From assembly GCA_950097015.1 (NCBI GenBank), contig CATNEN010000001.1:22134001-22198000 (forward strand): 64,000 nt of DNA, in the 5' to 3' direction. This DNA comes from Macrostomum hystrix (lineage: Eukaryota > Animalia > Platyhelminthes). Every line of letters begins with the position of its first letter. Position 1 is the stretch's first letter. Below are positions 8,215 through 33,566 of the stretch, in pieces. Both the position numbers and the translations under genes were made by a program. The notes under the pieces were generated by a model, which searched no databases, had not been told where the DNA came from, and saw nothing but the letters and a program-made list of their open reading frames with translations.

Positions 8215-8358
8215 AGGTCATACATTATGGTCATGCAAGAGTCATACAGCATTGTTATACAAGAGTCATGCAGGAAGGTCATACAAGAGTCATGCAAGAG
8301 TCATACAGGATGGTCATACAAGAGTCATACAGGATGGTCATACAAGAGTCATGCAGGA
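8215..8358. repeat. Degenerate short tandem repeat just 3' of the kinase stop
   Basis: Repeated gtcatacaaga / gtcatgcagga motifs. Confidence 0.7.
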
Positions 8359-8376
8359 GCTAAGAATTCAACTGGG

Positions 8377-9358
8377 TCACTTGCGTGTGAATATGCTAAA
8401 GAAGCTCTGGCTCTGCCTTCGCAGCTGCCTGCCCGTCAGGAACTCGTGGCTCAGCAGCTCCAGCGCGGACTTTCTCCTCCTGCGGTCTCGGTTCGTGCAG
8501 CGGCTGTAGAAGTCCCGCAGCTCAGCCGAGCAGCTGCCGGGCAGGGCGGGGGCTCCCCTCTGACTGAGCTGCTGGGCCATCTGTAAGTAATTGCCTGTGT
8601 TTGAGTAGGGCCTGCCTCCCGTGGCCATCTGGAAGACTGAGCAGCCGAACGCCCAGATGTCCGACTCTCTGCTGTACCGCGGGTTGCCTTCATCGTCTGG
8701 TGCCAGCAGCTCTGGCGCCATGAAGTTCAGAGTGCCCTTCGGTGTGGCAGTGGAGGCTATGAGGTGGCTGACAGACTGCTCCAGCTTGATTGACAGGCCG
8801 AAGTCGATCAGCTTGACTCGCCTGTTGTCACCGACCACAATGATGTTGCTGCAGTTGATGTCTCTGTGGATCACAGGCGGCTGTCGGCTGTGCAGGTAGT
8901 GCAGCGCGCTGCAGATCTGCAGGTGGGTGGGTTGAGGAACTGGTGTCGGCTGACGCTAAAAAGTCAACTCACTGCATCACTCATGAGCAGGCTGCTCAAA
9001 TCTCACCTGCTCGCTGAACTGTCGAATGGCTTCTTCGCCCAGCGGCTTGGAGTCGAGAAATCTCTCCAGGCTGCAGCCATCCAGCAGCTCCATGAACACA
9101 ACAGCTGTCGCATACTCAGGCTGAGCGATGTGCAAGAAGCTGACGATGTTGGGGTGCCACAGCTGGCACAGGTTCTTCTCGCCCTCAATAATCTTGTCGA
9201 TCTCCTTTCTCTTTGAAGGCTCCAGGTCGCCGAGCTGCACTGGCAGTCTGAGAGTCTTCGCAGCGCACCTGATGCCCGTGTCCGTGAGCACTTCGTGGAC
9301 ATCGCCGAAGCCTCCCCTGCCGATGAGTTTGAAGGATTCCCAGCGCTCAATGAGAAAC
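8377..9358 (-). CDS. Kinase-domain exons (9007-9358, 8377-8916) of the ANK-kinase gene
   Basis: GRGGFG Gly loop, [37 protein letters not shown]; intron 8917-9006. Confidence 0.92.
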
Positions 9359-12300
9359 CTGAGGAATTTTTAGTGGCTGATGAAAGCAAGCGGCAGGTGG
9401 GCAGAAGAGCTGCAGATTGCAGAGAGCAGAAATGCAATAAAAGCAGCAGCAATGAATGTACTCACGGCTTTTCAAAGTACTCCTTGTCTTCGGACCTGCA
9501 TGGGCATTGGTTAGTGGAAGTGGAGATTGTCAACGAGTAATTAGTATAATAGCACTCAAAAACTCCATGCATGAAGTAATATAGTATCAACACTAACTTA
9601 CCTCTTCTGGCCCCTACCAGCCTTGCCGCTGAATAAGCGACATGAGTTGTATGTGTGTCATACAGGGGCAGAGAACAGAGAGGTGACGAGGGGGCAGAGA
9701 GGTGACGAGGGGCAGAGAGGTGACGAGGGGCAGAGAGGTGACGAGAGGCAGAGAGGTGACGAGGGGGCAGAGAGGTGACGAGGGGGCAGAGAGGTGACGA
9801 GAGGCAGAGAGGTGACGAGGGGGCAGAGAGGTGACGAGGGGCAGAGAGGTGACGAGGGGAAGAGAGGTGACGAGGGGGCAGAGGGCGGGTCCACCCACCC
9901 ACTCCACAGTCAGCCAGTCTGTTTTTTATAGTGTTTGTGCTTGTGTTTGTCCTGAGTCTATTCTGTCCTTTGCTTGTGTTTACTGAAGGCACTGCTGTAA
10001 TTAATACCAATTAACAGTTCAAATAGCAGCTAACTGTAACTAAACTTTACATTTTAGCTCAGCTGTGTTAGTTTTTCAGCAATAGTAGCGCAACAGCGCA
10101 ACAGCTAGGCTGAAATGGCGCAGAAGCGCTAAAACTGACTGGCGGAGGCCGCCAGCCAATGGGAGAGACGGGGCGGGGAGGTCGCCAGCCAATGGGAGAG
10201 ACGGGGCGGGGAGGTCGCCAGCCAATGGGAGAGCGCCCGCACGCCCACCCCTCCAGAAGCGATGCTCAGCCGTTTCACAAGCCCCAATTTCCACAGCGTC
10301 GAAAGCAGAAGTTGCTTCGGACTGCACAAACTCTGAATTGCACACTGAAAATTGGGCTTTGTGAGAGCGGCCCGCACGGTACGCAGTGCGCATTTTCACC
10401 TATAAAAAGCAGCAAATGGAAAGCTTTATTCCCACTGATAATATTAATGCTATTATTTACGGCACTGCAAACTGCTTGAGTGGCAGAGGCGGGCAAAACT
10501 CTGATTGGACAGAAAATATTTTGGCTAAAAATTGCAACCCACTTTGACTCTGATCAGTGAAACACTGCGACCTGCACCCACTCAGTGCGATAATGCAAGA
10601 TGAGAGACATTCTCAGTCGCCATGGCAACTCACCCACGCAGCAGCTCGGCCAGTTCGCTATTTCCCATCCCTGTGGCCCAATCCAGCGCAGTCTTGCCAT
10701 CACTGCTCTTCAGGCTCCAGTCCGACCCTGCGGCCAGCAGAGCCCGACCGACTGCGGCGGCGGTGGCGGGGGGCGCCCAGGCTGCCCACATGAGGGGCGT
10801 GGATTCACTCCAATTCCTGGCGTTGGCGGAGGCTCCGGCATGGAGCAGCTGGGAGACTGCGGCAGAATTGCCAGTCCCGGCTGCCCTGTGCAGGCAACTG
10901 GCAGCAAACACATCAGCACAGGTGGGGTCCCCGAGCTGCAGCAGATGCTGCCACAGAGCCCCGTCAGAGCACTGGATGTTCCCAGCTGCCCACATTAACG
11001 CTGTCCGACCCCAGCTGTCCGGCAGGTCGCAGTTGCCGCGGGTCGCCGCTCGCCGCAGCCCCGCCGAGTCGCCCGCCTCGGCCAACCGCTCCAGTTCCTC
11101 TCGCTCTGCCTCCTCCTGCAAAGGCGAGTGTAGAATTTGAGCACAGCTGCTCATCTGCACCCACATCGGCACCCCAGATGCCACTCACCGAGGCTGTCAG
11201 GCCGGAGATGCCGCCATCTTCACCCAGTCGCAGCCGCATCTCCCTGCAAAGCAGAAGAAATCAAATGCGAAATTCTCATCGCTCACAAACAGGCAGCAGT
11301 TTCAGACAAGCTCATTTTTACTCAGCCTCAAATTCGCTGCATCAGCAAAGTGTTGGGGTCGAGAAAGCACTGCGGCATGAGAAATGCCAATTCTCAGTGC
11401 TGCCAATGTGGCACACACAAATCTGTGCACTGGCCATTGGAGATTTGCTGATTGCGTTTTGCTGCATGAAATGCTCTGATTGCAGTTCGGCTGTGCGCCA
11501 TTTGACAAGAGGATTCGGTCAGGGCTTTCGGTGAGGGCGACTGAGGCAGCTGAAGGCTGTGGGCTGAAACTGAGGCAGCTGAAGGCTGTGCATGGGCTGA
11601 AACTGAGGCAGCTGAAGGCTGTGGGCTGAGACTGAGGCAACTGAAGGCTGTGGGCTGAGACTGAGGCAGCTGAAGGCTGTGCATGGGCTGAAACTGAGGC
11701 AGCTGAAGGCTGCGGACTGAAACTGAGGCAGCTGAAGGCTGCGGACTGAAACTGAGGCAGCTGAAGGCTGCGGACTGAAACTGAGGCAGCTGAAGGCTGC
11801 GGACTGAAACTGAGGCAGCTGAAGGCTGCGGATTGAAACTGAGGCAGCTGAAGGCTGCGGACTGAAACTGAGGCAGCTGAAGGCTGCGGACTGAAACTGA
11901 GGCAGCTGAAGGCTGCGGACTGAAACTGAGGCAGCTGAAGGCTGCGGACTGAAACTGAGGCAGCTGAAGGCTGCGGACTGAAACTGAGGCAGCTGAACAT
12001 TCAGCAGGCATTTCTCTGAGCACTTCAGCAAATCTCCAACTTAAGGGAAGTGAAATCTCAGCCAATCAAAATACTGGAGAAGTGAAACTGCCCGTGGGAG
12101 ACATAAACACATGGGGAATTTGTTGTGCAGTTGATTAATGCACGTACATAGTTCGTACATGTACACCTCTGATATCGATTGGCGCAGAATATATATAGTC
12201 CAAATACTGAGAGCCAACTTGGCGTGAAAGTTTCGGATACTAACTTGGCTGACTCGCGACTATTCATTTACAACATTGGCATCGCAAGCACAAGCGAACA

Positions 12301-15300
12301 CCCACCCCAATAAGCCGGGGTCGGAGTAGACTGAAGTGAAGTGACTGCAAGCCTGCCAAGCCAAGCGTAAACAACAGCGCCAAACTGCAAAAGTGCAAAC
12401 TGAAACATGACGAGTGACAGCAACTCAGCAGAAGCGCCGCGGATCAGCGTATCGCCGCCGGATCAATTCCTGCCGCAGCCGGGCCGACCGGCGAGGCCGT
12501 GGAAAGAGTGGAAGGCCCTCTTTGAGAACTACTTACTTGCGGCCGGCTACGACACTTTGCCGGAAGCGAGGAGGCGCGCGCTGTTGCTGCACTGCCTTGG
12601 CGCGGAAGGGCAGCGAGTCTTTGCGGCTGTGGCAGCAACGAAGAGGCCGAGTCCGACAGAACTCGCGGCGACAGTCGCGATTCTGGACGAGCAGTTCGGA
12701 GCCAAAGTCAACGTGGTGGCGGAGCGCCACAAGTTTCGGCAGCGCAGTCAGCGTCCGGGTGAAAAGATTGCGGACTTCGTGGCGGCTCTGTATGCTCTGG
12801 CTGGCTCATGTGAGTTCCGCGACATGATGGAAGAAATGATCCGCGACCAGATCGTGGAGAAGGTCAGCGACAGGCGAATTCGAGAGCGCTTGCTGATCGA
12901 GGACGGCCTGACGCTGCAGAAGGCAGTGACGCTGAGCCAGCAATGGGAGACCAGCATCGCTGAGGCCAGCGCGATAGAGACGGAAGGCGCAGCCGCGGCC
13001 GGAGCACAGCTGGAAGAAGAGGTGAAGAGAGTCCGACTACAACCAGACAGGAAGAACACAGGACAAGGGCAACCAGATCGAGAGTCATGCTCCAAGTGCG
13101 GAGGCGGGCACAACAGACGAGCCCGGTGTCCAGCTGAAGGCAAGAGTTGTCATGTCTGCGGGAAGGCGAACCATTTCGGCCGGATGTGCAGGTCGCAGGG
13201 CGCCAAGGTCGCCGAGGTCATGGACGAGAGCGGCCAAGCCGTGTACATGGTGCGCGGCGCCGCCAGTCCCGACATCCGCTGCCGGCTGAAGGTGCATGGC
13301 ATCTGGCTGAATCTGCTTGTAGACTCGGGAGCCAAGGTGTCCATCCTGTCAGAGAGGACCTTCAGGAAGCTCGGAAACCGGTCGCCACTCCAGCCGTCGA
13401 CCAAGAAACTCATCGCGTACAACGGCAAGGCAATCGATGTCGTCGGCGAGGCGGTGCTGTCCGTCAGCTATCGCGGCCAGCTGGTGCCATTTTTCTGCTT
13501 TACCGTGGTACGGCAAGGCTCCGACATCATGGGAACGGATCTGATGCAGCACCTCAGCTTCCAGGTGGTGGACAAGGACGGCGACCTCGTGCGCACAGTC
13601 GAAAAAACGGCAGAGCTACCGGTCTGGCTGGCCGAGCGCTTCAAGCCACTGACGCAGGGACTCGGGCGGATCCGAGGATTCGAGCACCGGCCCAGGCTGA
13701 ACCCCGCCGTGCCCCCGGTGGCGCAATCGCTTCGCCGCATCCCACTTAGCATCAAAGACAAAGTCCAGGCGGAGATTGACCAGCTGCTGGAGGATGACAT
13801 CATCGAGGAGATCCAGGCTTCAGAGTGGATTTCGAACCTGGTGATCGTCCCGAAGCCTGATGGCAAAATCAGGGTCTGCAATGACCTCAGGTGCCCAAAC
13901 AAGGCCATAGTTCCGGATAAGCAGCCGCTGCCGACATTCGAGGAGCTGACAACGGAGTTCAAGGGCTCAACCGTGTTCACTAAGCTGGATTTAAATTCTT
14001 CGTATCTGCAGTTGGAGCTAGCAGAAGATAGGCGGGACTTAACGGCCTTCATTACGGAGAAAGGGCTGTACCGGTACAAGCGCGTATGCTATGGCCTAAA
14101 CAGCGCCCCGGCGGCCTTCCAGAAAGTTCTCAGCAAGATTCTCCATGGCTGTTCCGGGACGCTGCACTACATCGACGACATAGTGGTGCACGCTGCCAAC
14201 GAGGCGGAGCACCTGCGGCGGCTCACGACAGTGCTGGACAAGCTACTCGCCCATGGCGTCACGCTCAACGCCTCAAAGTGCCAGTGGGCTGCAGAGACGG
14301 TGCAGTTCCTGGGCTACATCGTCTCCGCGAGAGGACTTCAGCCGATGCAGTCTAACGTTGAAGACATCGAGGCGGTGCCGGAGCCCCAGAACGCCGAGGC
14401 AGTGGCCTCATTTCTGGGAATGGTTAAATTCTATTCCAACTTTCTGCACAACTTGTCCGACATCGCCGAGCCGCTGCTGCTGCTACTTCGCAAAGAGCAG
14501 CCCTGGAACTGGACAACAGATTGCCAAAAGGCCTTTTGGAGGCTCAAGAAGATGGTGGTGTCCCCAACATGCTTGCGATTCTTCAGTCCCGACGACAAGA
14601 TCATCGTGGCCTGCGACAGCTCCGCGCACGCTCTGGGGGCCGTGCTGATGCAAGACGACAGCGCCGGGGTTCGAAGACCAGTCGCTTTCGCGTCAAGGAC
14701 CCTGTCAGCGACCGAGCGCAAGTACTCCGCATCAGAGAGAGAGGCTCTCGCGTGCATCTTCGCGTGCGAGAGATGGCACTATTTCCTGTTCGACCGGAGA
14801 TTCGAGCTGCACACGGACCACCAGGCTCTGACGACGCTGCTGACGGCTCAAGGCAGCGGCCACCGGCCTCTGCGGCTTCATTGATGGGCCGACCGCCTGC
14901 TCGCGTACGACTTCCAAGTCTGCCACGTTCCTGGCAAGAAGAACATCGTGCCAGATTTTTTGTCGCGCCACGGCGCTCTCGGAGCAAAATGTCCAAGGCA
15001 AAGCGAAGAGGACTCGACCGAGCTCAAAGTGAATGCCGTACTGCTGTCGGGCGCGCTGGAGATTGTCAGTCCAAGCGAACTGGCTGAGGCATCCCTGCAG
15101 GACCCGGTGATCAATGATGCGGTCACAATGACGCTCCAGGGGTGGCCTAACTCCATCAAGCAGCTGAAGCCGGAGCTGCAGCCGTTCTGGAGGATGCGGA
15201 CGCAACTGGCGCTCTGGAATGACGGCAAGTGCCTGGCCAACGGCACCCGAGCAGTAATCCCCGCATCCCTGAGGGAGAAGACGCTGCAGCTGGCGCATTT

Positions 15301-18300
15301 CGGGCACCTCGGCGTGAGCAAAATGAAGCAGCATTGCCGGGACGCAGTCTGGTGGCCGCAAATCGATCAGCATATCGAGGAATTTGTGCGACATTGCGAG
15401 GCCTGCCTGCTTAGCGAGAAGAACTTTAAGCCACCCAAGACGGTCCTGACCCCTACGAAGTGGCCGACGCGTCCATGGGAGGAACTCCAGCTCGACATCT
15501 TCGGGGAGCTGCACTCTGCACCGAACTCCTGTCGCTTCATCCTGGTGCTGTACGATTTGCATTCAAAGTGGCCGGAGGCTGCCTGCATGTCGACTGTCAC
15601 AAGCGCGGATGTCATCGACGCCCTGACAACGTGGTTTAGCCGCTGGGGCCTGCCGAAGAGCATTAAAACAGACGGAGGTCCGCAGTTCGTGTCCGGCGAT
15701 TTCGAGGATTTTCTTCAGCGCTGCGGCATCCGGCACCGGCAGTCACCGCACTACCACCCCCAGGGCAACGCGGCCGTAGAGCGCTTCAACCGTTTTCTCA
15801 AGGACGGCCTAAAGACGCACCTAGAGGAGGGCTACGACTTCAAGGACGCGGTGAAGACGCTGCTGTGGTCGTACAGGGCCACCCCACATGCACTGACTGG
15901 AGTGTCACCGGCGGAGCTTATGACAGGCCGGAAGATCAGCACCCCGTTGACAGCTCTGCAGCCAAGGACAACAGCGCGGCACAGACTGGCGGCCAGCATC
16001 AAGCGGAGGCAGCAGCGCGTTTTCGATCAGCTCAACACGACCCGGAGGCCGCCGCCCACGTTCATAGTCGGCGACTGGGTGCGCGTGAAGCGGCCGTTCG
16101 CCCGCGGCAAGCTGAGCAGCCGCCTGTCCGAGCCACGGCAGATCTCCCGGATTGCGAGCGCGACCACCGTCATCCTCAGCGATGGCTCCCGCTGGCACGT
16201 CGACAACTGCGTCCGGGTACCGCGGCCAGCCGGAGCGCTGCCGCACTGGCCAGCGCCGGCTCCCAGCGCAGCCGGGACAGCCGCGGAGGCGGCGACGGCG
16301 GCAGACCCAGCGAGACAGCAGCAGCCAGCCCAGACAGCGATCCGAGTGAGCTCAAGGCCGCGAGCGCCGCCGCAATGGTACGGTGAAATCGTGACTCACT
16401 GACTCGTTTATTAGTGACGGTTATTCAGCTGTTATTAGCGATCAGCTGTTTCGATTTAATTCTCTTTGAAGTACCTGTGGCATAAAAATATCATTTTACT
16501 CCTTCGATGCTTGGTAATGCACTTTTATTTCCTGCTCAATATTTGCATAATTATTTTCGTTGCTCTATCCTTTGAAAGGGAAGGTGAATGTTGTGCAGTT
16601 GATTAATGCACGTACATAGTTCGTACATGTACACCTCTGATATCGATTGGCGCAGAATATATATAGTCCAAATACTGAGAGCCAACTTGGCGTGAAAGTT
16701 TCGGATACTAACTTGGCTGACTCGCTACTATTCATTTACAACAGAATTCAGTTACAGCATAAAATTCCCCTGAATCTCAAATGCTTTCCCAGATTGACAA
16801 GTTCCCATTTGAGTGATCTCCAATCAATTTATTAGTTAGCTCGAGTTGCTAAACTAGAAATGCAAAAGCGACTGCACCGAAATGAAATCCCATTGGGCCA
16901 TGCAAAAAACAGCGGCTTCAGCTGACTGGCTCTGATTGGCTGGGCTGAGACCAATGCTCAGGCCACCCCAGCTGCATTGCTGCGAATCGGGCACAGCAGC
17001 GAACTGATCACTCACCGCTCAATGTCGCTGGCCAGCTCTGAGTGGCCGCCCTGCCTCGCCAGGTCGAGCGCGGTTCGACCTTCGCTGTCCTGCAGGCCGA
17101 GCAGCTGATCCCTCTTCGAGTTGCCATGCACCTCATACTCATTATACCTCCTCTGCCTCAGCAGATGCAGCAGGTGTTTCGCGGTTCGACAGCTGCCGGC
17201 CCGAGCTGCTTCCATCAGCGGTGTCGCGCCTCGCTCGTTCTGCAGCCACTTCGCATCGAACGGCAGCAGCGCCAGCAGCCGCAGGTGGTTTCGTCTGGCT
17301 GACACGTGCGCTGCCGTGTCGCCCGCCCCGTCACGCGCTCTCGGGTCCGCGTCCAACTCAAATAAGTACAATACGCACTTCTCAGTCTCCACGGGAGTCT
17401 CTGGAGCGTCGGCCACCAGCATGAGGACGGTCCATCCGCTCTCATCGGTGCTTGCCACCAGCTGTCGCGTGGCGAGCAGCCGCACCTGGCCGAAGTCACC
17501 ATGGATGACCAGCTCGGAGAGTCTCTGCACCTGAGAACAAATATAACCTGCATATCGGTTCATTTACTTTGACAGTCTTACTTTCATATTTAAATTTAAA
17601 TATCAGCGGACAAAAATGGAGTGATAAATTTAGAAATCAATACTGGGCTTCCTGTGAGTCGTAGTCGTTGGTTGCAACTCGAACAAAGAAATAAATCACT
17701 CACCGATTTTCGAAACTCCTTGGCAGCTGAGGTACCTTCCGCCCCATAAACAGGCCTGAAATGGGCAACAATGGGATTTCATCAAATGTACTGTTCGTAT
17801 AAGCATGGAGTCAGCATCTTTCGCTGATCATTCTCAAAGAGATTATCATGCTGCAGAAGCAGATTTAAGAAGCCTCAATTGTTGGGGCCCAGTTCTTGAA
17901 TGGCGGGCAATAGTCCTCCGAACTCGAAGATTCATAAAAAATTAGCTGAATAACGAAATATGCATTTGTACTAAGAAAATGTGTGTAGGCACATATTGGC
18001 ACATATATGCGAGGGCCTAGACCCGCCACTGTCTGTCTGATATCCGAATTATTTCAAAGTTGCAGCACTACAGAAGAACAGAAACGAAACGGAATCCACA
18101 ATAGACAAACAATGCAGGTTTTGAGTCCCAGGTACATCATACACGCACCATAAACTCTATACTGTATTTTCTTGCACCATTAAAATGCTTTTGCCTTCTG
18201 CTGTAGACTAAAAAGTTCTTTACAATGGATGAAATCTCTCCAACGAAATTTTCCCTGACCACCTTGTAAGGATCCTAGTTGCACCGGAAAAGAAAATGTA

Positions 18301-21300: not shown

Positions 21301-24300
21301 CGGCCATCTCTTTTGCCGGCTTCATCTGGAATAGTGCCCTGGAGACCAAAGGGGTCCTGGAGGCCCTAAACAAGGTGCAGGGCCGTGCTTGTCGAGCCAT
21401 CATGAGTGCGGCACCCTCCACTCCCTTCGCTGGCATGAATGCCTTCCTGGACCTTCCCCCTTTAGATCTTTTTATCAAGGGGGAAGCGATGAAGACGGCT
21501 CGTCGTCTTCTGGACGCGGGCATCTCCATCCGGAAGCAACTTGCCTTCAGCAAGCGGAACCTCCAGCCCCATGGCGACCTCAGCCTACGGGACCTGGACG
21601 CAGCAGGTCTCAAAATTCTCTCAGACGGAATCCCGTCGACGCTGTGCCCACCGCTCAAATTCAAATCCAGCATTCCGCCTCGCCAGGAAGTACGTGACCA
21701 CGGCCAACCCCGTGAAATTCACTGCTTCACCGACGGATCGCAAATCAACTCGGTCTCTGGTTTCGGCTACTGCATTATGTCCGGAGGGAAACTGTGGCGA
21801 CCTTCTCCCAGCACACCGGCATAAACTCTACCGTTTTCCAGAACGAAGTTCTCGCCATCAGCTCCTGCGCCCTGGAGCTGATCAACCAAAACGTCCACGG
21901 AGCAGAAATCTTCCTCCACTCGGACAGCCAGGCGACGATCCATGCCCTTGGACGCACGCACACCTGCTCGCGCACAGTCCTCGACTGCGTCGCGCAACTC
22001 AACCGCTTAGGGACCCACAACAAGGTGTCCCAAAGGTGGATTCCAGGGCACTCTGGCCGCCCTGGTAACGAATTGGCCGACAGCCTCGCCAAGGCCGGTT
22101 CGACGGGTTCGCTTTTTGGCCCCGTGCCTGCGGTCTCCACCCCTACCGCCGTCGTCAACACTCGGATTAACCAGTGGGTGACCTCAAAGCACAAGGACAA
22201 ATGGATCAATACCGCCGATTGTCGGCAGTCTCGCGCTGCTGTCCCTTGTCCCTCCACTGCCCTTCGCAAAGCCTTGCTTGGACTGAACCGCAAGGACATC
22301 AGGGCAGTTACCATGGCCCTCTCTGGCCATGGCTGTTTCGCCAGGCACCGCTTCCTGCAAGGCAAAATCCGCAGTGAGGAATGCCCCTTCTGCCTCTCCT
22401 ATTTTGAGGATGCAGAGCATTTTATTTGCGACTGCCCCGCCTTCACTCAGGACAGGCTCACCTATCTCGGCCCAAACCCGGATCTACCCGACGTTTTCAG
22501 GCCTGAGAACATCTGCCAGCTTCTTCTTCTTCTTCTTCTTCGGGTGTGCGCGGGCCAGGGCCCATGACACCGGGCATCAGATGATGCCCGCCTTCCCAAG
22601 CAGGGCCAGCACGGAAGCACAGCATTCAAAGACCGCAGCGGGCTCCGGGCAGGGGCCCCAGAGGCGGCAGCGGTGGGCGGTCAGGGCGGGGCAGGCGAGG
22701 AGCACGTGGGCCGCCGTCTCGTCGCCCTCGCCACAGAGTCGACAGGTGGGGGCCACCGGGGCGCCAATCGCGGCCTGGAAGCCCCGGAGGGCATGGCAGC
22801 GGTCGGCGCGCAGCTGGCAGATCAGCCGCTCGTGCCGCCGCGAGAGGTCAGTCGGCGGAGGAGGCGGCAGGTGGCCCGAGGTGCAGGCGGCGTGCCAGGG
22901 CAGCGAGCTCGTGCCCGCAGCGTCGGCGGCCGCCGCGCGGTACAGCTGGTGCCAGCGGGCAAGGCAGTGGCGGCGAATGGCGGCCTGGGCCGCAGCCAGC
23001 GGGATGTGGGCCTCAGCCTGCGGCAGCGCGGAGCCGCGCTTGGCAATGGCATCGACCGCCTCGTTGCCAGGGATGCCCGCGTGGCCCGGGACCCACTGCA
23101 GGTGGACAGCGACGCCTCCGGCTGCGAGGTGGGAGAGGCTGGCCCAGATGGCATCGGCAGTGGTGACGCCCGTCGAGCCGGGGCCGGACTCGAGCGCAGC
23201 CAGCGCACTCAGGGAGTCCGAGCACACGCGGACCGGCGACAGCTCGGCCGGGTCCGGTGCCGCCAACACCCACTGGAGGGCCTCGGCGATGGCCACCAGC
23301 TCAGCGTGGAAGCTGGACGTCACGTGACCGGCTGGGACGCACAGTGCCGTGTCGGGCTCGACCAGGGCGCCGCTGCCGCCGGCCGAGACGCCATCCTTTG
23401 CCGCTCCGTCGGTCCAGATGGCCGTGCGGGCGGGCGGCAGGCCTGCCAGCGTTAGCTCAGCCGCCGCTCTCCGTGCCTCAGGCGGATCGCACCGGGAGGA
23501 GGGGGCGGACAGCTGCAGACCAAAGGTGACGGTGTCCAGGTTGGTCCAGGGAGGCGTCGCGGGGACAGCGCAAACGGGCTCGCGCGGGTAGCCGCTCAGG
23601 CCCGCGTCGGTGCTGACTCTGGTCGCCGTTTCCCGCCAGCCTCGGGCGCTCTGGAGGCGGCGGCGTGGGCCCTCGGCGGCCGCGCAGGCGAGCAGCGGGT
23701 TGTCGGGCGGGAGCCTGAGGGCGCGCTCGAGGAGAAGGCCGGCGTGCATCTCGGCGCGGACCGCCATCGGGGGCAGGCCGGCCTCTCGTTCTAGCACCTC
23801 CGACCTGGTGTTCCGAGGGCACCCGGTGATGACGCGCGCGCACAGGCGCTGGGCTCGGTCCAGCTGCTCAATGGCCGTCTTGCAGGCCGACGGCATCCAG
23901 GCGCCGGCCGCGTACTCCAGCACCGGCCGCACGTAGGCAGTGTAGAGCCGGCGCACGTCGGTCTGCTTGGCGCCCCAGCTGCTACCGGAGAGCGCGGCCA
24001 GGACGCCGCACCGGGCGCGGGCGCGGCCTGCGACGTTGGCGGCGTGTGCGGTGAAGCTCAGCAGGCGGTCCAGGATGACGCCGAGAAACCGGGGCTGGCG
24101 GTCCGTCGCGAGGGGGGCGTCGTTCAGCTGCAGCCGCAGCTCCCGGCTGGCCTCACCTGCGGTGGTGGAAAACAGGGATGCGGCGCACTTCTCCGGCGCC
24201 AGCTGCAGCCGCCACTTGTTTGCCCACTCGGCCGTCGCATCGATGGCCCGCTGCGCTTTCGCCTCGGCCTCCTCCACAGTCAGGCCTTGCACTGCAATGG

Positions 24301-27300
24301 CCAGGTCGTCCGCGTAGAGGAGCGGCGTGCAGTCGGGCGGCAGCTGGTCCGGCAGGTCGTTAATGAAAAGCGCGAAGAGCAGCGGGGCAAGAACGCTCCC
24401 CTGTGGTAAGCCCTCGCGGAAGAGCCGCCAGCTGCTCGTCGCGCCGTCGACCCTGACGGCGGCCCTTCGGTCGGCCAGGAAGCTGCTGAGCCAGCGGACC
24501 CCGGCAGCCGGGATGCCCGCGGCGTGGAGCTTGTGCAGCAGGCCCTGCTTCCAGACGGTGTCGTACGCCCTGCGGAAGTCGAACAGAACGACGACAGTCC
24601 GCCGGGCAGGGCTGGCCTGGTGACCATCACTGATGAGCTGGGTGAGCCTGGCGATCTGGTCCTCGGTGCAGCGCCGCTTGCGGAAGCCGGCCTGAGCCGG
24701 GTGCAGCAGCTGCCGGGACTCGGCCCACCAGTAGAGCCGCGCTTGGACCAGGCGCTCGGCCAGCTTGGCCATGGCGGAGGTCAGGGCGATCGGCCGGTAG
24801 GAGCCAATCACGTCGGCCGGCTTGCCCTTCTTCAGGATCGGCACGACGTGGGCGCGTCGCCACGCAGACGGGACCTCCCCCTTTGCCCAGGACTGGTTGA
24901 TCACGTACAGAGCCGCCCGGCGACCGGCGGGGCCGAGGTGCTGCAGGTGCTCGGCACAGATGCCGTCTGGTCCTGGGGCTTTCCTGGCCGGGAGGGAGCG
25001 AAGGACTCTGTCCAGCTCGCGAGACGAGAATTGCTTGCTAAAGTCTCCTGCCTCCGGGCTGTCAGCTTGTGCGGCGGCGCGGCTGCGGTGGTTCTCGCGG
25101 CGGAGGATGCGCGTCCTGCGGTCTTGCGGAAGGCGGCTCACGGCGGCGTACTCCTTGGCGTAAGCCTCGGCGATGTCCTTTGGTCGGACGTAGAGCTTCT
25201 GGCCCACACGGAGCGCTGCATCCCGCTGCAGGTTGTTGCTTCTGCCGTCAAGGGAGCGAACGACTCTCCAGATCTTTGAGTGGTCTGTGTCCGCTGCCAC
25301 CTCGCCGGCGAAGGCCCTCCAGCTGTCGCGCTTGGCGTCGGCGATGATCTTCTTGGCGTCTGCGCTGGCCTTGTTCCAGGCCGGCCGCTCGTTCGGATCG
25401 GCAGCGGCGGCGGCCCGCGCGGCCCGACGGCTCTTCACGGCGTCCTCGACCTCCGGGGTCCACCAGGCCTTCGGGGACGGCCGGGCCCCTCGCGGGATGA
25501 ACGCCTTGTCGGCCGTCATGATGGCCTCGGTCAGCAGCCGGTTGGCTTCGGTGGCCGTCGCGGGCGGCAGGGCGTCCCAGCCAGCCAGGGCCTCCTCGGT
25601 CTGCGCGCGGAAGCCGGCCCAGTCCGCTTTGGCCCAGGCCCGCCGGGCGGCGCCCGCTCTCTTGGCTGCGCCTCGGCTGCCATGAATGATGACGCTGATC
25701 GGCAGGTGGTCCGATCCGACGTCCCTCCGCACCTGCCACTCAGCCCGGCTGGCGAGCGACTTGTGGCACAGGCTGACGTCGGGCGCCGTCTGCCGAGCAT
25801 CGGCGCGGCGCGGCATGTGGGTGTGGCTGCCGTCATTCAGGATGCGCATGCCGGAAATAACGGACCATTCAAAGGCGGCCGTGCCCAGGTCCGTCTCTTC
25901 CGATTCGGGGTCCCAGGCCGGGTGGTGCGCGTTGAGGTCCCCCAGGATCACCGTGCTGGCACCTGACGGGAGCCACTGGGGGTTGAAACGCTGCACGCGG
26001 TCGTCGCCTTCGGCGTTTCTGATGGGCGGCACGTACAGGCAGTGAATGTCCAGGCTCTCGACCGTCTTCTCAGATGGGAAAACCCGGATGCCGGCCCACT
26101 CGGTGGAGACGTCCTCGGGGGCGCAGGGCCGCTCATGCAGCACCTCGTAGCGCAGCCCCTCGCGGATAAGGATCGCGACCCCTCCGCCGCGGGTGGGGCC
26201 ACCTGAGCGCCGGCCGCTCTGTCTGTGGCGCCAGACTGATTGAAGCCCGGCAGGCGTGGTTCCCTTCCTTCGGCGGTGTGGGTCTCTTGAAGACAGGCCA
26301 CGTCAACGCGCAGGTCTTGGCAACGACGCCCTCTGCGTTGAGTTGCAGGAGGTGCAGGCTGCTGGGGGCCTGAGCGCGCGCGGACCGACGGTCGGGCTGG
26401 CGCTTCGCGCCGCCGGGGGCCCGCCGTTGAGGCTCGGCAGGCTGCGTCGGCAGTTGGTCAGTCATTTAGGACCGGTTCGGACCGCCAGATGCTTGTTGGG
26501 CGGTGAGATAGGGCTGTGCTGTGCTGTGCTTTGCTGGGCTTTGGGAGGGCCCGTTTGATGGCCTGCATTTCGTAGGACTTGCGTCCTCCGGGGGGCACCT
26601 CGTGGAGGCGCAGGCCATTGCCCCCCACATCTGCCAGCTCGTCCGATACCTGAGGGCCACCGGGCGAGCAACCCTCCACCTCCTGGACTCTCCGGAGGAG
26701 GACCGCGCTGCGGACGCCGGCACCACCGGATCCCCATTTGGGGAAGGGACAGAGGAAGGAAAGGAGAATTTAAAGCCCTGACAAAATTACAAATTTTAAG
26801 TCCATTGGTGCTATTATGAAACCTTGTCACCAATTAAAATTACCTATTATCAAAGTTTAAACATTCGAAATTAATATTTAATGACCTTTAACGTAGTATT
26901 ACGTTTCGTAAATTCAAAATAATAACAAAAATATTATTTTTTACTTGCAATAGGTAACTTGCTGGTCTGAGCAAATAAGTATAAGTTATCACCCACTTTT
27001 TTTATTTATTTTGGTCGGGAACGGCTGAGGACTCGTTTATTGGCCGAGGTGTCCTAGGAAATCACTATGAAAGTTTTCCCTGTGAATTTGAACAGACTGT
27101 GTCTTTGAGCTCAGAGAACAGATTTGCAGTACAACACTTCTCTTTTTTGTTGCAATGCCTACTTCGCTGTATTCCGGGTCACGTATAAGCTTTGATATAA
27201 TGGAGTCTGGGCGATGAGATAGGCATGACCAGAACTGGAGGCTTCTTTTCTGTATATCATATAATAGAGGCAGTCTACCAAGTTCTGATCGGGCCCCATT

Positions 27301-30300
27301 GCTGTCAGTATTTTGACTGAGCTGTAGTATTGCCTTGCAGTTCCTAAAGTTAATTCTCTCTATTAAGCCCCGATCCCAGGGTCCCCAGTTCCAAGAAACA
27401 AAGGTGCCCCAGGCCTCTGGGGCATACAGGACTATGCTTTCAAACATGGCTGTGCAGAACAGCATTAGCTGCTTAAATTTGACGCTTCGGAATCCTGCCA
27501 ACTTCCTAAGAAAAATTATTGGGTAGTCACACTTTTTGCTAACTTCTATGGCGTGGGTATCGACTGTCCCCTTCGAGTTCATGTTAAATCCCAGGTATTT
27601 CCACTCTTGAACTGGTTCCCCAGTCGACACTGCATTATCAAATTATTTGCCCTTTTTGTTGGGGAGTCACATTGCCAAAGCTTCGTTTTTGTAATATTTA
27701 TTTCGTTTTTTGAAGCAAAAATCTGCTCCTTTGTCTAGACCCTTTTGTAGTTCTGTTAGATCTTCGCCGAAAATAACTAGGCCATCACAATAGAGTAAGT
27801 AGTTGATTTCTTCATTCATTATATCGGTGTTGATGTGGAATGACTCATTTAACATAGCACTCAATGGGCCTATGCATAGGGAAAATGGTAGCTGCGACAA
27901 GGGACAACCTTGTCTCACGCCATTTGTGATTGGACGGGCCTTTGTTGCTGTACTTTCCTATGTCCTTATCTGGAAATTTCCTTTTGTGCATATGCTCTGA
28001 ATCATTTTCATGATTGACGGGTTCACATAAAGATCTTTTTGTCATTTGATCAAGGTCGAGTGGTTAACCATATCAGAGGCACTTTTAAGATAGAAAAATA
28101 CTAGATGAAAGGCATTTTCTTTCGTCTTTTGCTCTGAATCAGTGTGAGCAGGGTGGCAATGTGGTCCGAAGTTCTATGACCTTTTTTGCTTTCGATTTGA
28201 TTAGAAGACAATAATAAAAATTTAAATTTGGTCATCGAGTTTGCCGTAGATAATTGATGCGAACAAACGTGTTATCGCAGGTAGCACACTGATGGGCCTA
28301 TAGTTTTCGGGGTCGATCGTTTCTGGGTCCTCTTTTGTAAATCGGGGTTGCTAACGCGACAGACCACGGCTGAGGTGTATAACCGAGTCTAAGTATTGCG
28401 TTGGATAGCTTAAGCAGCACGGGTTTTATTACTGCAATTGCATACAAAATGTGCTCGTCAGCTATCCCATCTATTCCTGCAGCCTTTCTTTTCTTTAGTT
28501 TTTTAACCGCCTTATCAATATCCTCAGCACTTATTGTTTCTATCGCCTGATTCCCTCCCGGACACTGATGTTGAAGACCAGCTGACCTCATTAATAATAC
28601 AATACAATTCGGCCTCGCTGCTTCTAGGCAACACAAAACGCGCTACTTTCTTTCCAAAATTGACTCCGCATAAGGAATCTACAACCAGTGTTTGATATAA
28701 ATGCTCTAAGAATACACCATTGCTAACTCTTGCTATTATCCTTAGCAGCTGCACAAGTCATTGCAAGTAAAATATGTTCTCTTACTTTTCATTCGGAGCT
28801 GTCGCATTTTTCAGAAGTTTCTGAGCACTCAGCTGTCCATTGTGCTCAGCGACTTGCCCAGGCCGCTCACCCTCCAGGTTTGTGGCTTGGAGACTGGCTC
28901 CGTGATTCAGAAGATGCTTGATCACCTGGTTATTGCCAGAAGCGGCTGCAAGGTGCAGGGAGGTGTTTCCATCCAGGTCTACGAGCCCATGCTTGGCCCC
29001 CAGTCTGAGCAGCAGTTGAGCACACTCTGCATGCTCATCTGTCGGATCGCAGCATCCGATGGCGGCCCACATGAGCGGAGTTCTGCAGTCCCAGTCTCTG
29101 AGGTCGCAGTTTTGGTTGTTAACCTCTCCGTCTAGTTGCTTCACATCGCCCTGAGAAGCCAGCTCGCCAAGTCGGACGGCGGTCTGAAATTCGTTATTTT
29201 TTATTGATATTCTTTCAGCTGCATAATAGAGCACGCCACAATAAACTTACCAGGACTTCGCTTTCTGTCTGGTTGAACTTCCATCTGGAAATAATATTTG
29301 AAACCACATTTGAGTAAATGTGTGCAATTAGTAAGTCTCAAAAGTACTTATATGGTACATTCCAACTGCCTCTTTCGCCATCCACTCACCGAATCAAAGC
29401 GCTGCAGATTCGTGTAGCGTCTAGTTTCCACGCCGTCCAATAGTACTTGGAGAAGTGTTGATCCGATAGACACTCGGATTCAGCCTTGAGAAGCAGTTCC
29501 ACCAGTTCAATATTCTCAATACCAATGGCCTTAGCGAGTTCAATGCAACTTCCATCTTTGTTCCTGGAGACCGCTGCTCCATTCCGTAAGAGCAGCTCTG
29601 CGATCGCTACATTTTCCTCATCCACAGCGAGCTGCAACGGCGTCCTGTCCTCACAGTCTCTGCAGTTGGGATCTGCTTCGGTCTCAGTCAGCAGCTGCTG
29701 TACCAGCGGTGTGTTGCCAGACAGAACTGCGCAGTGCAAAACCGTGTGTCGGAGAGAATCAGCGCTTCGAACATCAGCTCCTTTGTCGATCAAAATGTGA
29801 GCACACTCGGCATGTGACTCGCTGCCCTGAGCAAAGTCTTCCAGCGAAGCAGCTGCAGCACACAGCAGAGCAGTGCGATGAGGGAGATCAACTTGCCTCT
29901 CATCCACTGATGATGGGCTTGAACCCGCGATTCGAGCCACCAACGCTGCGTTCCCGTCCGCTGCCGCCTGGTGCAGAGAGACTGGTGCCGTCTGAAAATG
30001 CATTTGAGAAATTGAAATCAGCTTGAAGTGTGTAAGAAACGGAGGACTTGCTGCCATTCTGACGTCACTCACCAAGGGTGTTAAACTTGGTGTCGCCCGT
30101 TCATATGCAGAACTTCGCAACTCCCTGTAAGGAGGTTAGTCGTTTATTTGTTCATGCTTTAAAAATAACAAGTTTTTAGATATACGCTCGAAGATGAAAC
30201 ATGATTAGTGCGTACCGTCTTTCCACGATGTCCAGCCAACTTCCTGTCGTTCTGCACGGAACAGCCAGGCAAAAGAAGTGAATCGAGAAATTGTTGTCGT

Positions 30301-31261
30301 CCACCATTAACTTGAGTAGAAGTCGAACTGATGTCAGCAGAAGTTCATCGTCTTTATATTTCTCTGGGATGGGGTGCGCAGCCGTCAGCCGTGTTTTGAA
30401 ACTGCTGTACTTGTCCTCACAGTCATCAAAGGCTGTCACTGTGACAGTTACGGACCCGCTGCTTGCTTCAAACTCAATCAGGCTTGTGTCGTGGTTCGGC
30501 AGTCTGTCGTGCTGGTGATCTGCGCCCTTTTCGCTCAGGTACCAGTTGCTCATGCCAAGTTCATCAAAGAGCACACAAATGTGGATTGGCGTTGAGTTGC
30601 GTGACGCCGAGGCCATCAACAGCTTTTGTAGTTCTTCCACAAACCGCAAGGGCTGCTCACCCTTCAAGTCAAACGGTAGCCAGCCTAGAGGACACTCGGC
30701 TCCATCGTTGACTCGAATGCACAGGCTTGAGCCCTCCTCGGAGGCGGTGAGGAGTTTAGCGTCCGCAACCCGCACGAGATGCAGCAGCAAAAAGGCGGAG
30801 GAGAGAAAGCCAGCGATTCGCTTTTGATTTGGCCGTCTCTCGAAATCGAACAAACTCTCTGCCAAGGCAAGGTCGCACTGAAGCCTCAGCTCCGAGATCT
30901 GGCAGCCTTTGAGGCAGTTGAAGGCCACTCGAAATAAGTCGTAAAGTAGAAACTGACGGTGCTCATCGTTGCTTGGCAAATTCAGAGGGCTCCCATTGTC
31001 TAGAATCCGGCAAACTACCGAGTGATAGGGCGACATCCATGTGAAGTCGGACTTGTGAGAAGAGCTTTTGGCTTCGTTGGGGTTCGAAATGGACAGGACA
31101 AGCTCGCACATTCGATCTGCCTCTGATGGCGATGATGGCAGCAGCTTCAGCAGTGGAGGCTCTCCGGGAATCCGAGGCAGCGGCAGATCAGCATTCCGAT
31201 TAATGCGGCAGGTTTTGAGCAGCTCACTGAGGACACCACCGTATAAACTGAGCAGGGCCAT
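8377..31261 (-). CDS. 13-exon gene: unrecognised N-terminal domain + ankyrin repeats + MAP3K/STE-like Ser/Thr kinase (1394 aa)
   Basis: Exons 30216-31261, 30073-30124, 29390-29991, 29251-29284, 28786-29183, 17704-17755, 17016-17530, 11189-11243, 10634-11115, 9602-9628, 9466-9495, 9007-9358, 8377-8916. All introns GT-AG, all 12 junctions phase-compatible, total 4185 nt with no internal stop. Confidence 0.75.
9665..9885. repeat. 20/21-bp minisatellite (intronic)
   Basis: Unit ggggcagagaggtgacga(g), ~10 copies. Confidence 0.93.
10150..10232. repeat. 33-bp repeat, ~2.5 copies, carrying CCAAT and GC-box motifs
   Basis: Unit gccagccaatgggagagacggggcggggaggtc. Confidence 0.8.
10634..11115 (-). CDS. 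Ankyrin-repeat exon 9 of the ANK-kinase gene
   Basis: [32 protein letters not shown]; cag| acceptor and |gtgagt donor. Confidence 0.9.
11540..11997. repeat. 29-bp minisatellite (intronic)
   Basis: Unit ctgaaactgaggcagctgaaggctgcgga, ~15 copies. Confidence 0.95.
12121..12275 (+). repeat. 5' LTR
   Basis: TGTTG...CAACA; direct repeat of 16589-16743. Confidence 0.95.
12407..16402 (+). pseudogene. gag-pol (gag, protease, RT, RNase H, integrase) with one in-frame TGA at 14882-14884
   Basis: Two CCHC knuckles, LVDSGA protease, YIDD RT, ACDSSA RNase H, HFGH..CEAC zinc motif and D-D-E integrase (LDIFG, TDGGPQF, AVERFN). ORFs 12407-14884 and 14948-16402 are in the same frame. Confidence 0.93.
16589..16743 (+). 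repeat. 3' LTR
   Basis: Direct repeat of the 5' LTR. Confidence 0.95.
17016..17530 (-). CDS. Ankyrin-repeat exon 7 of the ANK-kinase gene
   Basis: [35 protein letters not shown]; canonical splice sites. Confidence 0.9.
18226..18393 (-). mobile_element. 3' fragment of the degenerate RTE-X-like LINE (C-terminal CCHC region)
   Basis: Diverged homologue of 31517-31675, which encodes [19 protein letters not shown]. Confidence 0.7.
18391..18910 (+). repeat. 97/98-bp tandem monomers (A-B-A-B-A plus a diverged 6th) upstream of the LOA-like ORF1
   Basis: Units start at 18391, 18488, 18586, 18683, 18781 and 18878. Confidence 0.95.
19045..20534 (+). CDS. ORF1 (gag-like) of the LOA-like element; probable frameshift near 20200-20310
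   Basis: 421-aa ORF 19045-20310 overlapped by ORF 20208-20534, which ends just before the ORF2 start. Confidence 0.65.
20570..22521 (+). pseudogene. ORF2 of the LOA-like element: most of the endonuclease and RT N-terminus deleted, frameshift near 21790
   Basis: The EN N-terminal peptide is followed at ~20635, in another frame, by the RT motif [10 protein letters not shown]; RNase H is split between ORFs 20628-21824 and 21794-22567. Confidence 0.85.
22577..26465 (-). pseudogene. APE endonuclease-RT-RNase H-CCHC polyprotein with frameshifts in the N-terminal EN (~26315 and ~26200)
   Basis: [74 protein letters not shown]; 1188 aa uninterrupted at 22577-26143. Confidence 0.9.
26558..26626 (-). 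ncRNA. HDV-like self-cleaving ribozyme at the 5' end of the Ingi-like element
   Basis: P1 GGGGGGC/GCCCCCC; P2 AUGGCCUGC/GCAGGCCAU; P3 GCC/GGU; L3 UCCACGA; P1.1 CC/GG; P4 AGGAC-GCAA-GUCCU; J4/2 ACGAAAU with candidate catalytic C. G1 abuts the TSD. Confidence 0.9.
27049..28730 (-). mobile_element. Degenerate LINE (RTE-X-like) RT remnant in intron 5; further copies at ~31514-33511 and ~36295-38292
   Basis: Frameshifted RT motifs: [50 protein letters not shown]. Confidence 0.8.
28786..29183 (-). CDS. Ankyrin-repeat exon 5 (copy 1)
   Basis: [26 protein letters not shown]; donor AA|gtaag. Confidence 0.88.
29390..29991 (-). CDS. Ankyrin-repeat exon 3 (copy 1)
   Basis: [30 protein letters not shown]; canonical splice sites. 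Confidence 0.88.
30216..31261 (-). CDS. First coding exon (copy 1): ~349-aa domain with no recognisable family
   Basis: ATG-initiated ORF; phase-2 donor CG|gtacgc fits micro-exon 30073-30124. Confidence 0.75.
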
Positions 31262-33566
31262 GCTGTGGTGTTTAATGCGGAGCGAAGCAGCTTTGCAGTT
31301 TTTTCTCTAGAGCTTTCACGCGTAGTTTTGATAAGAAATAAAATGGAATGAAAAAATGCTCGTATGTTTCTGCTGACAGTCACAAAGCTTTTTTCAGGAA
31401 AAAAGGATGACACAGTTCTTGTGGCTTGGCTTTTATGGCATCGTAATTCAGGCCTTTCTCAACGACTCAGACCGAGTGATTATGCAACAATGGATAGCTC
31501 GCATGTTGGAGAGAAAGGATGGATGAAATGTCTCCAACGAAACTTTCCCTGACTGCCTTATAATTATCCCAGTTGCACCGGAATAGAAAATGTACTTCAT
31601 TTTCGATCCCGACTTTGCACTTCGGGCAAATTCTGTTTCCATAAGGGATTTTCGGGTGAACAGAACGCAGAGTTTCGCAGGCCAGTCTGTGATTTCCTAA
31701 ACGAAAATCTGACAGTATGCGCCTGTGTTCCGGATTTGAAACATTTTATAGATTTTTTTCACGTCAAAAATCCACTTGAAACTGCAGTAGAAATGGCTGA
31801 GCTTTGTAGAATTTTGCACCTTGTCTGCAGTGTCCTAGGAAATCACTATGAAAGTTTTCCCTGTGAATTTGAACAGACTGTGTCTTTGAGCTCAGAGAAC
31901 AGATTTGCAGTACAACACTTCTCTTTTTTGTTGCAATGCCTACTTCGCTGTATTCCGGGTCACGTATAAGCTTTGATATAATGGAGTCTGGGCGATGAGA
32001 TAGGCATGACCAGAACTGGAGGCTTCTTTTCTGTATATCATATAATAGAGGCAGTCTACCAAGTTCTGATCGGGCCCCATTGCTGTCAGTATTTTGACTG
32101 AGCTGTAGTATTGCCTGGCAGTTCCTAAAGTTAATTCTCTCTATTAAGCCCCGATCCCAGGGTCCCCAGTTCCAAGAAACAAAGGTGCCCCAGGCCTCTG
32201 GGGCATACAGGACTATGCTTTCAAACATGGCTGTGCAGAACAGCATTAGCTGCTTAAATTTGACGCTTCGGAATCCTGCCAACTTCCTAAGAAAAATTAT
32301 TGGGTAGTCACACTTTTTGCTAACTTCTATGGCGTGGGTATCGACTGTCCCCTTCGAGTTCATGTTAAATCCCAGGTATTTCCACTCTTGAACTGGTTCC
32401 CCAGTCGACACTGCATTATCAAATTATTTGCCCTTTTTGTTGGGGAGTCACATTGCCAAAGCTTCGTTTTTGTAATATTTATTTCGTTTTTTGAAGCAAA
32501 AATCTGCTCCTTTGTCTAGACCCTTTTGTAGTTCTGTTAGATCTTCGCCGAAAATAACTAGGCCATCACAATAGAGTAAGTAGTTGATTTCTTCATTCAT
32601 TATATCGGTGTTGATGTGGAATGACTCATTTAACATAGCACTCAATGGGCCTATGCATAGGGAAAATGGTAGCTGCGACAAGGGACAACCTTGTCTCACG
32701 CCATTTGTGATTGGACGGGCCTTTGTTGCTGTACTTTCCTATGTCCTTATCTGGAAATTTCCTTTTGTGCATATGCTCTGAATCATTTTCATGATTGACG
32801 GGTTCACATAAAGATCTTTTTGTCATTTGATCAAGGTCGAGTGGTTAACCATATCAGAGGCACTTTTAAGATAGAAAAATACTAGATGAAAGGCATTTTC
32901 TTTCGTCTTTTGCTCTGAATCAGTGTGAGCAGGGTGGCAATGTGGTCCGAAGTTCTATGACCTTTTTTGCTTTCGATTTGATTAGAAGACAATAATAAAA
33001 ATTTAAATTTGGTCATCGAGTTTGCCGTAGATAATTGATGCGAACAAACGTGTTATCGCAGGTAGCACACTGATGGGCCTATAGTTTTCGGGGTCGATCG
33101 TTTCTGGGTCCTCTTTTGTAAATCGGGGTTGCTAACGCGACAGACCACGGCTGAGGTGTATAACCGAGTCTAAGTATTGCGTTGGATAGCTTAAGCAGCA
33201 CGGGTTTTATTACTGCAATTGCATACAAAATGTGCTCGTCAGCTATCCCATCTATTCCTGCAGCCTTTCTTTTCTTTAGTTTTTTAACCGCCTTATCAAT
33301 ATCCTCAGCACTTATTGTTTCTATCGCCTGATTCCCTCCCGGACACTGATGTTGAAGACCAGCTGACCTCATTAATAATACAATACAATTCGGCCTCGCT
33401 GCTTCTAGGCAACACAAAACGCGCTACTTTCTTTCCAAAATTGACTCCGCATAAGGAATCTACAACCAGTGTTTGATATAAATGCTCTAAGAATACACCA
33501 TTGCTAACTCTTGCTATTATCCTTAGCAGCTGCACAAGTCATTGCAAGTAAAATATGTTCTCTTAC

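Follow-up and report, generated by a model that had tools for sequence, protein, structure and literature searches.

A probable gene fusion in Macrostomum hystrix, joining a Macrostomum-only N-domain/ankyrin gene to a truncated ankyrin-kinase paralogue

How does a protein kinase come to close a gene whose first domain occurs only in one genus of flatworms? The question is raised by a locus of Macrostomum hystrix lying in a stretch of 64,000 nucleotides (GenBank assembly GCA_950097015.1, contig CATNEN010000001.1, positions 22,134,001 to 22,198,000 of the forward strand; hereafter the window, numbered from its first letter), where a reading of the letters alone (the sequence-only reading) had proposed a hidden 23-kb gene with an unrecognised N-terminal domain, four ankyrin modules (ANK1 to ANK4), and a MAP3K-like kinase. 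Our analyses indicate that this is probably a transcribed chimeric gene, in which a Macrostomum-only N-domain/ankyrin gene has been joined to a truncated paralogue of an ankyrin-kinase family. We favour a chimera because the parental families exist separately, because homology to the kinase family breaks at the ANK3 acceptor, because the ATG exon of that family is missing, and because the donor that makes the join lies over the old stop codon. The locus would then offer a clean and datable gene birth by fusion, with both parents extant, a breakpoint that coincides to a few bases with an acceptor, and an RNA-supported join.

Kinases and ankyrin repeats are found together in other proteins. In RIPK4/ANKK1 and DAPK1, the kinase precedes the ankyrin repeats, so that these proteins share both components with the window gene but in the opposite order. 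ILK and TNNI3K, on the other hand, carry ankyrin repeats before the kinase, as here, but are conserved single-copy animal genes with kinases of the TKL group, whereas the window gene has a kinase nearest to STE-group and WNK kinases, belongs to a lineage-specific multi-copy family, and bears an extra N-terminal domain. The architecture fits no conserved orthologue group, and the N-domain homologues of Macrostomum lignano are all without a kinase, which agrees with the earlier remark that it could not be assigned to a known type.

One transcribed unit across an 11-kb intron

Among the open reading frames (ORFs) listed for the window are seven large pieces, all on the minus strand, at the positions from which the sequence-only reading had built its gene. 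Pfam recognises in separate pieces both the four ankyrin modules and the kinase named there, with ankyrin profiles (Ank/Ank_2) matching four ORFs (29386-30120, 28782-29234, 17012-17563, and 10630-11184; E 6e-33 to 2e-12) and protein kinase profiles (PF00069/PF07714) matching two (8977-9291 and 8377-8874). The spliced model was rebuilt with GT..AG ends required of all introns, and the joined translation was checked for frame and locally aligned to the closest M. lignano protein, A0A1I8JJD2 (P0001; 703 amino acids (aa), described as ANK_REP_REGION domain-containing). An 11-exon version running from 31261 to 8377 on the minus strand comprises 4269 nt and 1422 aa without an internal stop. A 12-exon version, obtained by removing an 81-nt in-frame intron at 30072-29992 (GTGAGT...TTTCAG), encodes 1395 aa and aligns to P0001 with 21 gaps, versus 48 for the 11-exon version; this 12-exon, 1395-aa form is the preferred predicted gene model (Table 1). 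The stop-free minus-strand frame announced earlier holds, whereas the 13 exons, 1394 aa, and six micro-exons (27-55 nt) that went with it give way in the best model to 12 exons, 1395 aa, and five micro-exons (52, 34, 52, 55, and 30 nt); no place for the 27-nt micro-exon was found when rebuilding the gene model. Judged by eye, neither a signal peptide nor a membrane segment is obvious in the protein. The 11-kb and 5.8-kb introns are filled with transposons, as had been described, two non-long terminal repeat (non-LTR) elements lying in the first and one long terminal repeat (LTR) element in the second, and with such introns and micro-exons a split or truncated annotation of the gene is probable.

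Part of positions 16900-17900 is contained in seven public sequencing runs, the contigs of which were compared with window positions 16700-18400. Contigs of X5 and X7 (both from organism C) and of X1 (from the related organism A) pass from 17704 to 17530 by a 173-nt skip with GT..AG ends, so that the splice between exons 6 and 7 is common to three runs from two studies. Those of X5 and X7 show zero differences from the window and extend beyond 17755 on the upstream side by 30 letters, for which the window has a single match, at 28786-28815; this extension has a C at 28812, the allele of copy A of the tandem repeat described below, where copies B and C have a T. At the other long intron, contigs of all four runs continue from 17016/17015 into 15 letters corresponding to 11228-11242. 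Both long-intron junctions postulated by the sequence-only reading are used, 28786>17755 in the spliced contigs of X5 and X7 and 17016>11243 in the contigs of all four runs. We infer that the X5, X7, and X1 contigs derive from RNA because they have the intron-less form and the genome holds neither a second exon 6 nor a 100%-identical ANK3 exon. The frame that spans the junctions, with exons 5, 6, and 7 bridged by the X5 and X7 contigs, is open throughout, and transcription as a single unit spanning the 11-kb intron is supported.

The parental families and their join

Both parental gene types are present separately in the genome, which was searched over 220,453,370 bases in 42 contigs (C1 denotes the contig carrying the gene). 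The 5' unit (N-domain, ANK1, and ANK2) occurs as three tandem copies in the window and at three further loci, with 92-99% identity to the window unit at C1:22.705 Mb and 27-60% at C1:11.84 Mb and C1:23.33 Mb. The C1:22.705 Mb copy ends shortly after ANK2, and no 3'-type exon was found within 22 kb downstream of it. Outside this genome, a HMMER search of 1.84 billion protein representatives returned six true homologues of the N-domain, all from M. lignano, and a kinase was found in none of the seven database matches. P0001 matches the N-domain with E = 7e-75 over residues 1-349, is colinear with the window protein at 46% identity over 715 residues, and has its stop at the position of the exon 5 end. 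Full-length N-domain homology, followed by the same ankyrin modules, places the 5' half of the window gene in the family of these proteins. P0001 and its relatives (P0002-P0005 and P0007), which are uncharacterised, share with it the N-domain (42-46% identity), two ankyrin modules, the linker, and the end at exon 5, but are without the bridging exon, ANK3/ANK4, and the kinase.

In the window, exons 1-5 are present three times within a tandem repeat (27049..41055, minus strand) made of 2.93 copies of a 4781-bp unit that are 99.65% identical. The copies differ by 32 mismatches in 9243 compared positions, and fixed single-nucleotide polymorphisms (SNPs) set A apart from B/C and B from C. Splicing to exon 6 is seen for the proximal copy A alone. 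Exon 5 ends, and exon 2 begins, in phase 2, a shared phase from which splicing from copy to copy (donors of B and C at 33567 and 38348, acceptors at 34905 and 30124) would be predicted to keep the frame and lengthen the ankyrin array.

The N-terminal domain occurs only in Macrostomum and is as unrecognised as the sequence-only reading had it, on which Pfam, HMMER, the ESM Atlas, and the fold search agree. The 361-aa N-domain piece has no Pfam match even at E <= 10 and no ESM Atlas match of 0.9 or more. AlphaFold2 gave a predicted local distance difference test score (pLDDT) of 37 from the single sequence; from an alignment of 11 sequences it gave an alpha/beta model with a pLDDT of 73 and a predicted template modelling score (pTM) of 0.79. 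Foldseek found no match to this model in the PDB at E <= 0.001, and the best VIA-align Z scores were 4.8 (Hachiman HamA) and 4.0-4.1 (PaqCI), the usual background being 7-8. Weak matches to PD-(D/E)xK nuclease-like folds recur among the fold matches of the N-domain. Such a fold was considered for residues ~145-340 and rejected, with Z scores below background and no conserved (D/E)xK in the alignment. The motifs that are conserved in the N-domain are C-x2-F-[DN]-E, Y-L, R-L-P-N-H-D, and V-P-C-R.

The 3' unit (ANK3, ANK4, and kinase) belongs to a larger family, with 16-17 close copies at 82-89% identity and some twelve that are more distant; the majority are on C1, in the interval from 22 to 27 Mb. 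In three paralogues that were retrieved, ANK3 to kinase lies within 3.7-4.6 kb, and no 5'-type exon was found within 15 kb upstream of any of the three. The clustered paralogues (C1:23.9-26.9 Mb) share with the window gene exons 7-12 (80-97% identical as protein), the intron positions, the HRDINCSN loop discussed below, and a hypervariable ANK4, but they have an ATG exon of their own, encode ~666 aa, and are without the N-domain, ANK1, ANK2, and exon 6. Nucleotide homology between the window and these paralogues extends from ~8300 to 17536 and breaks six bases upstream of the exon 7 acceptor. Upstream of the ANK3 exon, the paralogues share a 70-nt intron and then, ~100 nt away, their first coding exon of 30 nt, which encodes MAAGGPSDDQ and has the donor GTGAGG. 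This ATG exon and its upstream sequence were not found anywhere in the window, and in their place stands unique sequence including exon 6, for which the genome and the retrieved loci gave no second copy (self match only). On the other side of the join, the exon 5 donor AA/GTAAGA overlaps the TAA that would close a protein made of exons 1-5 alone (the A-only form), ending in NEK after ~721 aa.

Three further observations concern members of this family. Two kinase-only copies lie just downstream of the gene on the minus strand (C1:22131226-22133754 plus window 1-71), each with N-lobe and C-lobe, at 80-95% and 46-51% identity; neither was found to be accompanied by ankyrin exons. Window positions 1-71 are homologous to 9538-9608. 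In the paralogue par23.92 (C1:23.926-23.931 Mb), the projected N-lobe exon has 351 nt instead of 352 and the joined frame is broken, which may reflect a pseudogene or an alignment slip.

With respect to the kinase itself, the Pfam score of the C-lobe exon, 101.5 bits with a cut-off of 31.7, places it in the kinase superfamily, and the N-lobe exon alone, a partial domain, falls below the cut-off. Of the residues and motifs expected of a competent kinase, the gene and its paralogues keep the Gly-rich loop, VAIK Lys, alpha-C Glu, HRD Asp, DFG, and APE. The catalytic-loop Lys (HRDxKxxN) is replaced by Asn, giving HRDINCSN, in which the Asn aligns with the Lys of MAP2K7 HRDVKPSN, and this loop is identical in 12 paralogues. 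Because the replacement is family-wide, kinase activity is uncertain and may be atypical, weak, or lost, with the fold kept. The class of the kinase was taken from the nearest solved chains, the two lobes being searched separately. For the C-lobe, these are MAP2K7, MAP2K6, ASK1, WNK, and PAK (E ~4e-23), and the best 60 PDB chains listed are all named STE-group or WNK kinases; for the N-lobe, they are MAP3K2 (MEKK2) and MAP3K14 (NIK), with weak matches (E 1e-4 to 9e-4). The kinase would by this measure be STE-like (MAP3K/MAP2K-like) and not TKL, and the earlier call of a MAP3K-like rather than a TKL kinase agrees with the nearest solved chains.

The family does not change evenly along its length. 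Across the paralogues, the ratio of non-synonymous to synonymous substitution rates (dN/dS) is 0.57-0.65 in ANK3 and the kinase N-lobe, and ~6.6 in ANK4 (dN 0.100, dS 0.015), where 38 of the 149 codons vary non-synonymously versus 2 with synonymous changes only. The claim of fast evolution made earlier holds for the ANK4 part of the family. The variable ANK4 codons fall mostly at beta-turn and first-helix positions, which we take to be the ankyrin binding surface, and this surface of the kinase family appears to be under strong diversifying selection. The sequence-only reading conjectured a sensor kinase, possibly of immune or stress signalling; a role in recognition or immunity is suggested by the diversifying ankyrin surface only. 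The fusion ties the Macrostomum-only domain to this multi-copy ankyrin-kinase family, which with such a surface is a candidate for a recognition system in a genus used as a flatworm model.

The steps by which the chimera could work may be set out as follows. A kinase paralogue lacking its first exon and a promoter (exons 7-12, ~660 aa) would have come to lie downstream of a complete N-domain/ankyrin gene (exons 1-5, ~720 aa), and transcription would start at the 5' gene. In place of termination, the stop-overlapping donor would be spliced and the 11-kb intron removed, with the unique 52-nt exon 6 keeping the frame into the ankyrin-kinase exons. The predicted product would be a cytosolic protein of ~1395 aa with the N-domain, four ankyrin modules, and an STE-like kinase, possibly acting as a binding scaffold in which the ankyrin surfaces recruit a target to a kinase that may be atypical or weak. 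Conjoined or chimeric genes are known from other animals, as in the case of TWE-PRIL, TRIMCyp, and Drosophila jingwei, and these read-through chimeras resemble the window gene in that the last exon is spliced past the upstream stop into an internal acceptor of the downstream gene, the first exon of which is lost or skipped. They differ from it in that the window gene has its donor on the stop codon, a unique 52-nt bridge exon, an 11-kb transposon-bearing intron, and a triplicated 5' unit.

Other readings and an apparent second 5' partner

Several points weigh against a functional fusion of this kind. At C1:11.70 Mb, ANK2-, ANK3-, and ANK4-like exons stand in a row, and the combination of module types is thus not unique to the window. 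The change from Lys to Asn in the catalytic loop may mean that there is no kinase activity. The contigs are junction-sized and comprise no full-length transcript, and their RNA origin is read from the spliced form, the library type of the runs being unrecorded. The depth of the contigs with the fused form is ~6-13, versus ~150-200 for paralogue-like contigs, contig depth being a poor measure of expression. The overall dN/dS of the window 3' half against its paralogues is 0.85-1.16, with which relaxed constraint also fits. The inversion considered below draws on a single contig, which comes from another organism, and on a single segment of 127 nt with 94% identity.

The strongest competitor, which we nevertheless consider unlikely, would take the join as conjoined-gene noise, the real product being the A-only protein of ~721 aa, the 3' half a decaying promoter-less fragment, and the splice a rare read-through. 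The low depth of the fused contigs, a 3'-half dN/dS near 1, and the four transposon insertions taken up by the intervening introns speak for it, as does the A-only form of both the C1:22.705 Mb copy and the relatives in M. lignano. Yet ~675 codons of the 3' half have stayed open and its six acceptor/donor pairs are intact, although this half has no start exon; the phase is preserved by the unique 52-nt exon, and the exon 6-7 splice recurs in three runs from two studies. Moreover, decay predicts an even spread of changes, whereas the high dN/dS is concentrated at the ANK4 binding positions and is also found between intact paralogues. A fusion that yields a protein remains our preferred account.

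A contig of X1, from organism A, has the exon 6-7 splice but other letters upstream of exon 6. These are 29/30 identical to C1:11855688-11855717, the 3' end of an exon (E_L; L049:7409-7719) with the donor GG/GTAATT in phase 2; in the distant N-domain/ankyrin paralogue at C1:11.84 Mb, the ANK2-like exon precedes it by 7 kb. Exons of the ANK3, ANK4, or kinase type were not found near E_L in the M. hystrix genome. Exon 6 behind an exon of a different N-domain/ankyrin gene, together with the ordered ANK2-, ANK3-, and ANK4-like exons at C1:11.70 Mb, could also be accommodated if the full architecture were ancestral, with the window locus as the intact founder and the short paralogues and kinase-less M. 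lignano proteins as truncated derivatives or incomplete models; gene models of M. lignano are often fragmentary. We regard this as quite improbable, since the closest M. lignano protein stops where exon 5 ends, the window donor overlaps a stop codon, and a kinase is found in 0/7 database matches. The window N-domain also shares no more than 30-33% identity with its counterpart in the C1:11.84 Mb gene, so that the 5' partner at least must have been exchanged. A mis-assembly, in which triplication and juxtaposition would be mis-joins in a repeat-rich region (three 4781-bp copies 99.65% identical, flanked by high-copy retrotransposons), is scarcely credible, given that the halves are joined in independent contigs of spliced form, which show 0 differences and carry a copy-specific SNP, and that fixed SNPs distinguish A from B/C and B from C.

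Within the fusion account, the X1 contig bears on where the 3' half may have come from. A 127-nt segment of the window (26731..26857, minus strand), which directly adjoins a retrotransposon insertion, occurs just once more in the genome, with 94% identity, at C1:11856893-11857019 (plus strand). This second occurrence is 1.2 kb downstream of exon E_L; the two agree in orientation with respect to transcription and are therefore inverted on the chromosome. Exon 6 and the kinase half may once have been part of the C1:11.84 Mb gene and have moved by a ~10.3-Mb inversion with staggered breaks or an equivalent event, a proposal to which we give roughly even chances. A broader idea, possible but doubtful, would see in the ankyrin-kinase half and its adaptor exon of 52 nt a portable output module that has changed its N-domain/ankyrin sensor head among very close relatives, standing behind the C1:11.84 Mb-type gene in one organism and behind the triplicated gene in this one; the N-domain would be a new fold. 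If this were true, a recent rearrangement would have given rise to a new receptor-like kinase in a diversifying family, possibly involved in recognition or immunity.

Features of the gene and its surroundings

Table 1. Exons, intron 5, repeat copies, and mobile elements of the chimeric locus, in window positions
Feature	Position	Strand	Description
Exon 1	30186..31261	-	ATG at 31261; putative Macrostomum-specific N-terminal alpha/beta domain, ~345 aa; donor GTATAT
Exon 2	30073..30124	-	52-nt micro-exon; exists only if the 29992-30072 intron is removed; support from consensus sites and fit to P0001, not RNA
Exon 3	29390..29991	-	Ankyrin module 1; Pfam Ank_2 E = 6e-33
Exon 4	29251..29284	-	34-nt linker micro-exon; GT-AG, phase correct; linker of M. 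lignano P0001 of the same length and similar sequence
Exon 5	28786..29183	-	Ankyrin module 2; donor AA/GTAAGA
Intron 5	17756..28785	-	11,030 nt: repeat-unit sequence, two non-LTR retrotransposons, 225-nt dispersed repeat, unique 17756-18161
Exon 6	17704..17755	-	52-nt bridging micro-exon; genome-unique; in no paralogue
Exon 7	17016..17530	-	Ankyrin module 3
Exon 8	11189..11243	-	55-nt linker micro-exon; splice sites kept in three paralogues
Exon 9	10634..11115	-	Ankyrin module 4; Pfam match; hypervariable across the family
Exon 10	9466..9495	-	30-nt micro-exon; GT-AG, phase correct; kept in paralogues
Exon 11	9007..9358	-	Kinase N-lobe: G-loop GRGGFGDV, CAAK lysine, alpha-C glutamate
Exon 12	8377..8916	-	Kinase C-lobe and stop codon; Pfam Pkinase 101.5 bits; motifs kept in 12 paralogues
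Exon 1 copies in tandem repeat	30186-31261, 34967-36042, 39748-40823	-	
Non-LTR retrotransposon in intron 5	22577-26735	-	Pfam APE/RT/RNaseH
Non-LTR retrotransposon in intron 5	~18391-22600	+	Pfam APE/RT/RNaseH
LTR (Gypsy-type) retrotransposon in intron 7	12121..16743	+	Pfam gag/PR/RT/RNaseH/integrase; homology gap versus paralogues

Two of the mobile elements listed in Table 1 have relatives elsewhere in the genome. The 5' end of the minus-strand non-LTR element (26627-26735) has >200 candidate genome places at 99-100% identity, and because of these near-identical copies its family appears to be very young and active. The LTR element of intron 7 is without a counterpart in the paralogues; a deleted copy of the same Gypsy-type family lies in an intron of the distant paralogue (L049:1445-4850, C1:11.849-11.853 Mb), and its LTR ends are 94-96% identical. 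A dispersed repeat of ~225 nt at 18162-18386 has ~40 genome copies at 75-91% identity and is also found upstream of exon 1 within the tandem unit (31519-31672 and 36300-36453). Minisatellite arrays at 9640-9900, 10150-10240, and 11300-12065, in introns 7 and 9, give rise to long spurious ORFs of repeated peptides, and a tandem array of 22-nt units with >30 copies occupies 43452-44400.

Four other ORFs of the window were noted. Pfam identifies a C2H2 zinc-finger protein at 3480-5126 (minus strand) and an RRM protein at 49691-50704 (minus strand), and a 392-aa ORF at 41413-42591 (plus strand) has no Pfam match. Positions 54346-59040 (minus strand) hold a single 1564-aa frame, apparently intronless, for an EGFR/ErbB-type receptor tyrosine kinase (Recep_L, Furin-like, GF_recep_IV, and PK_Tyr).

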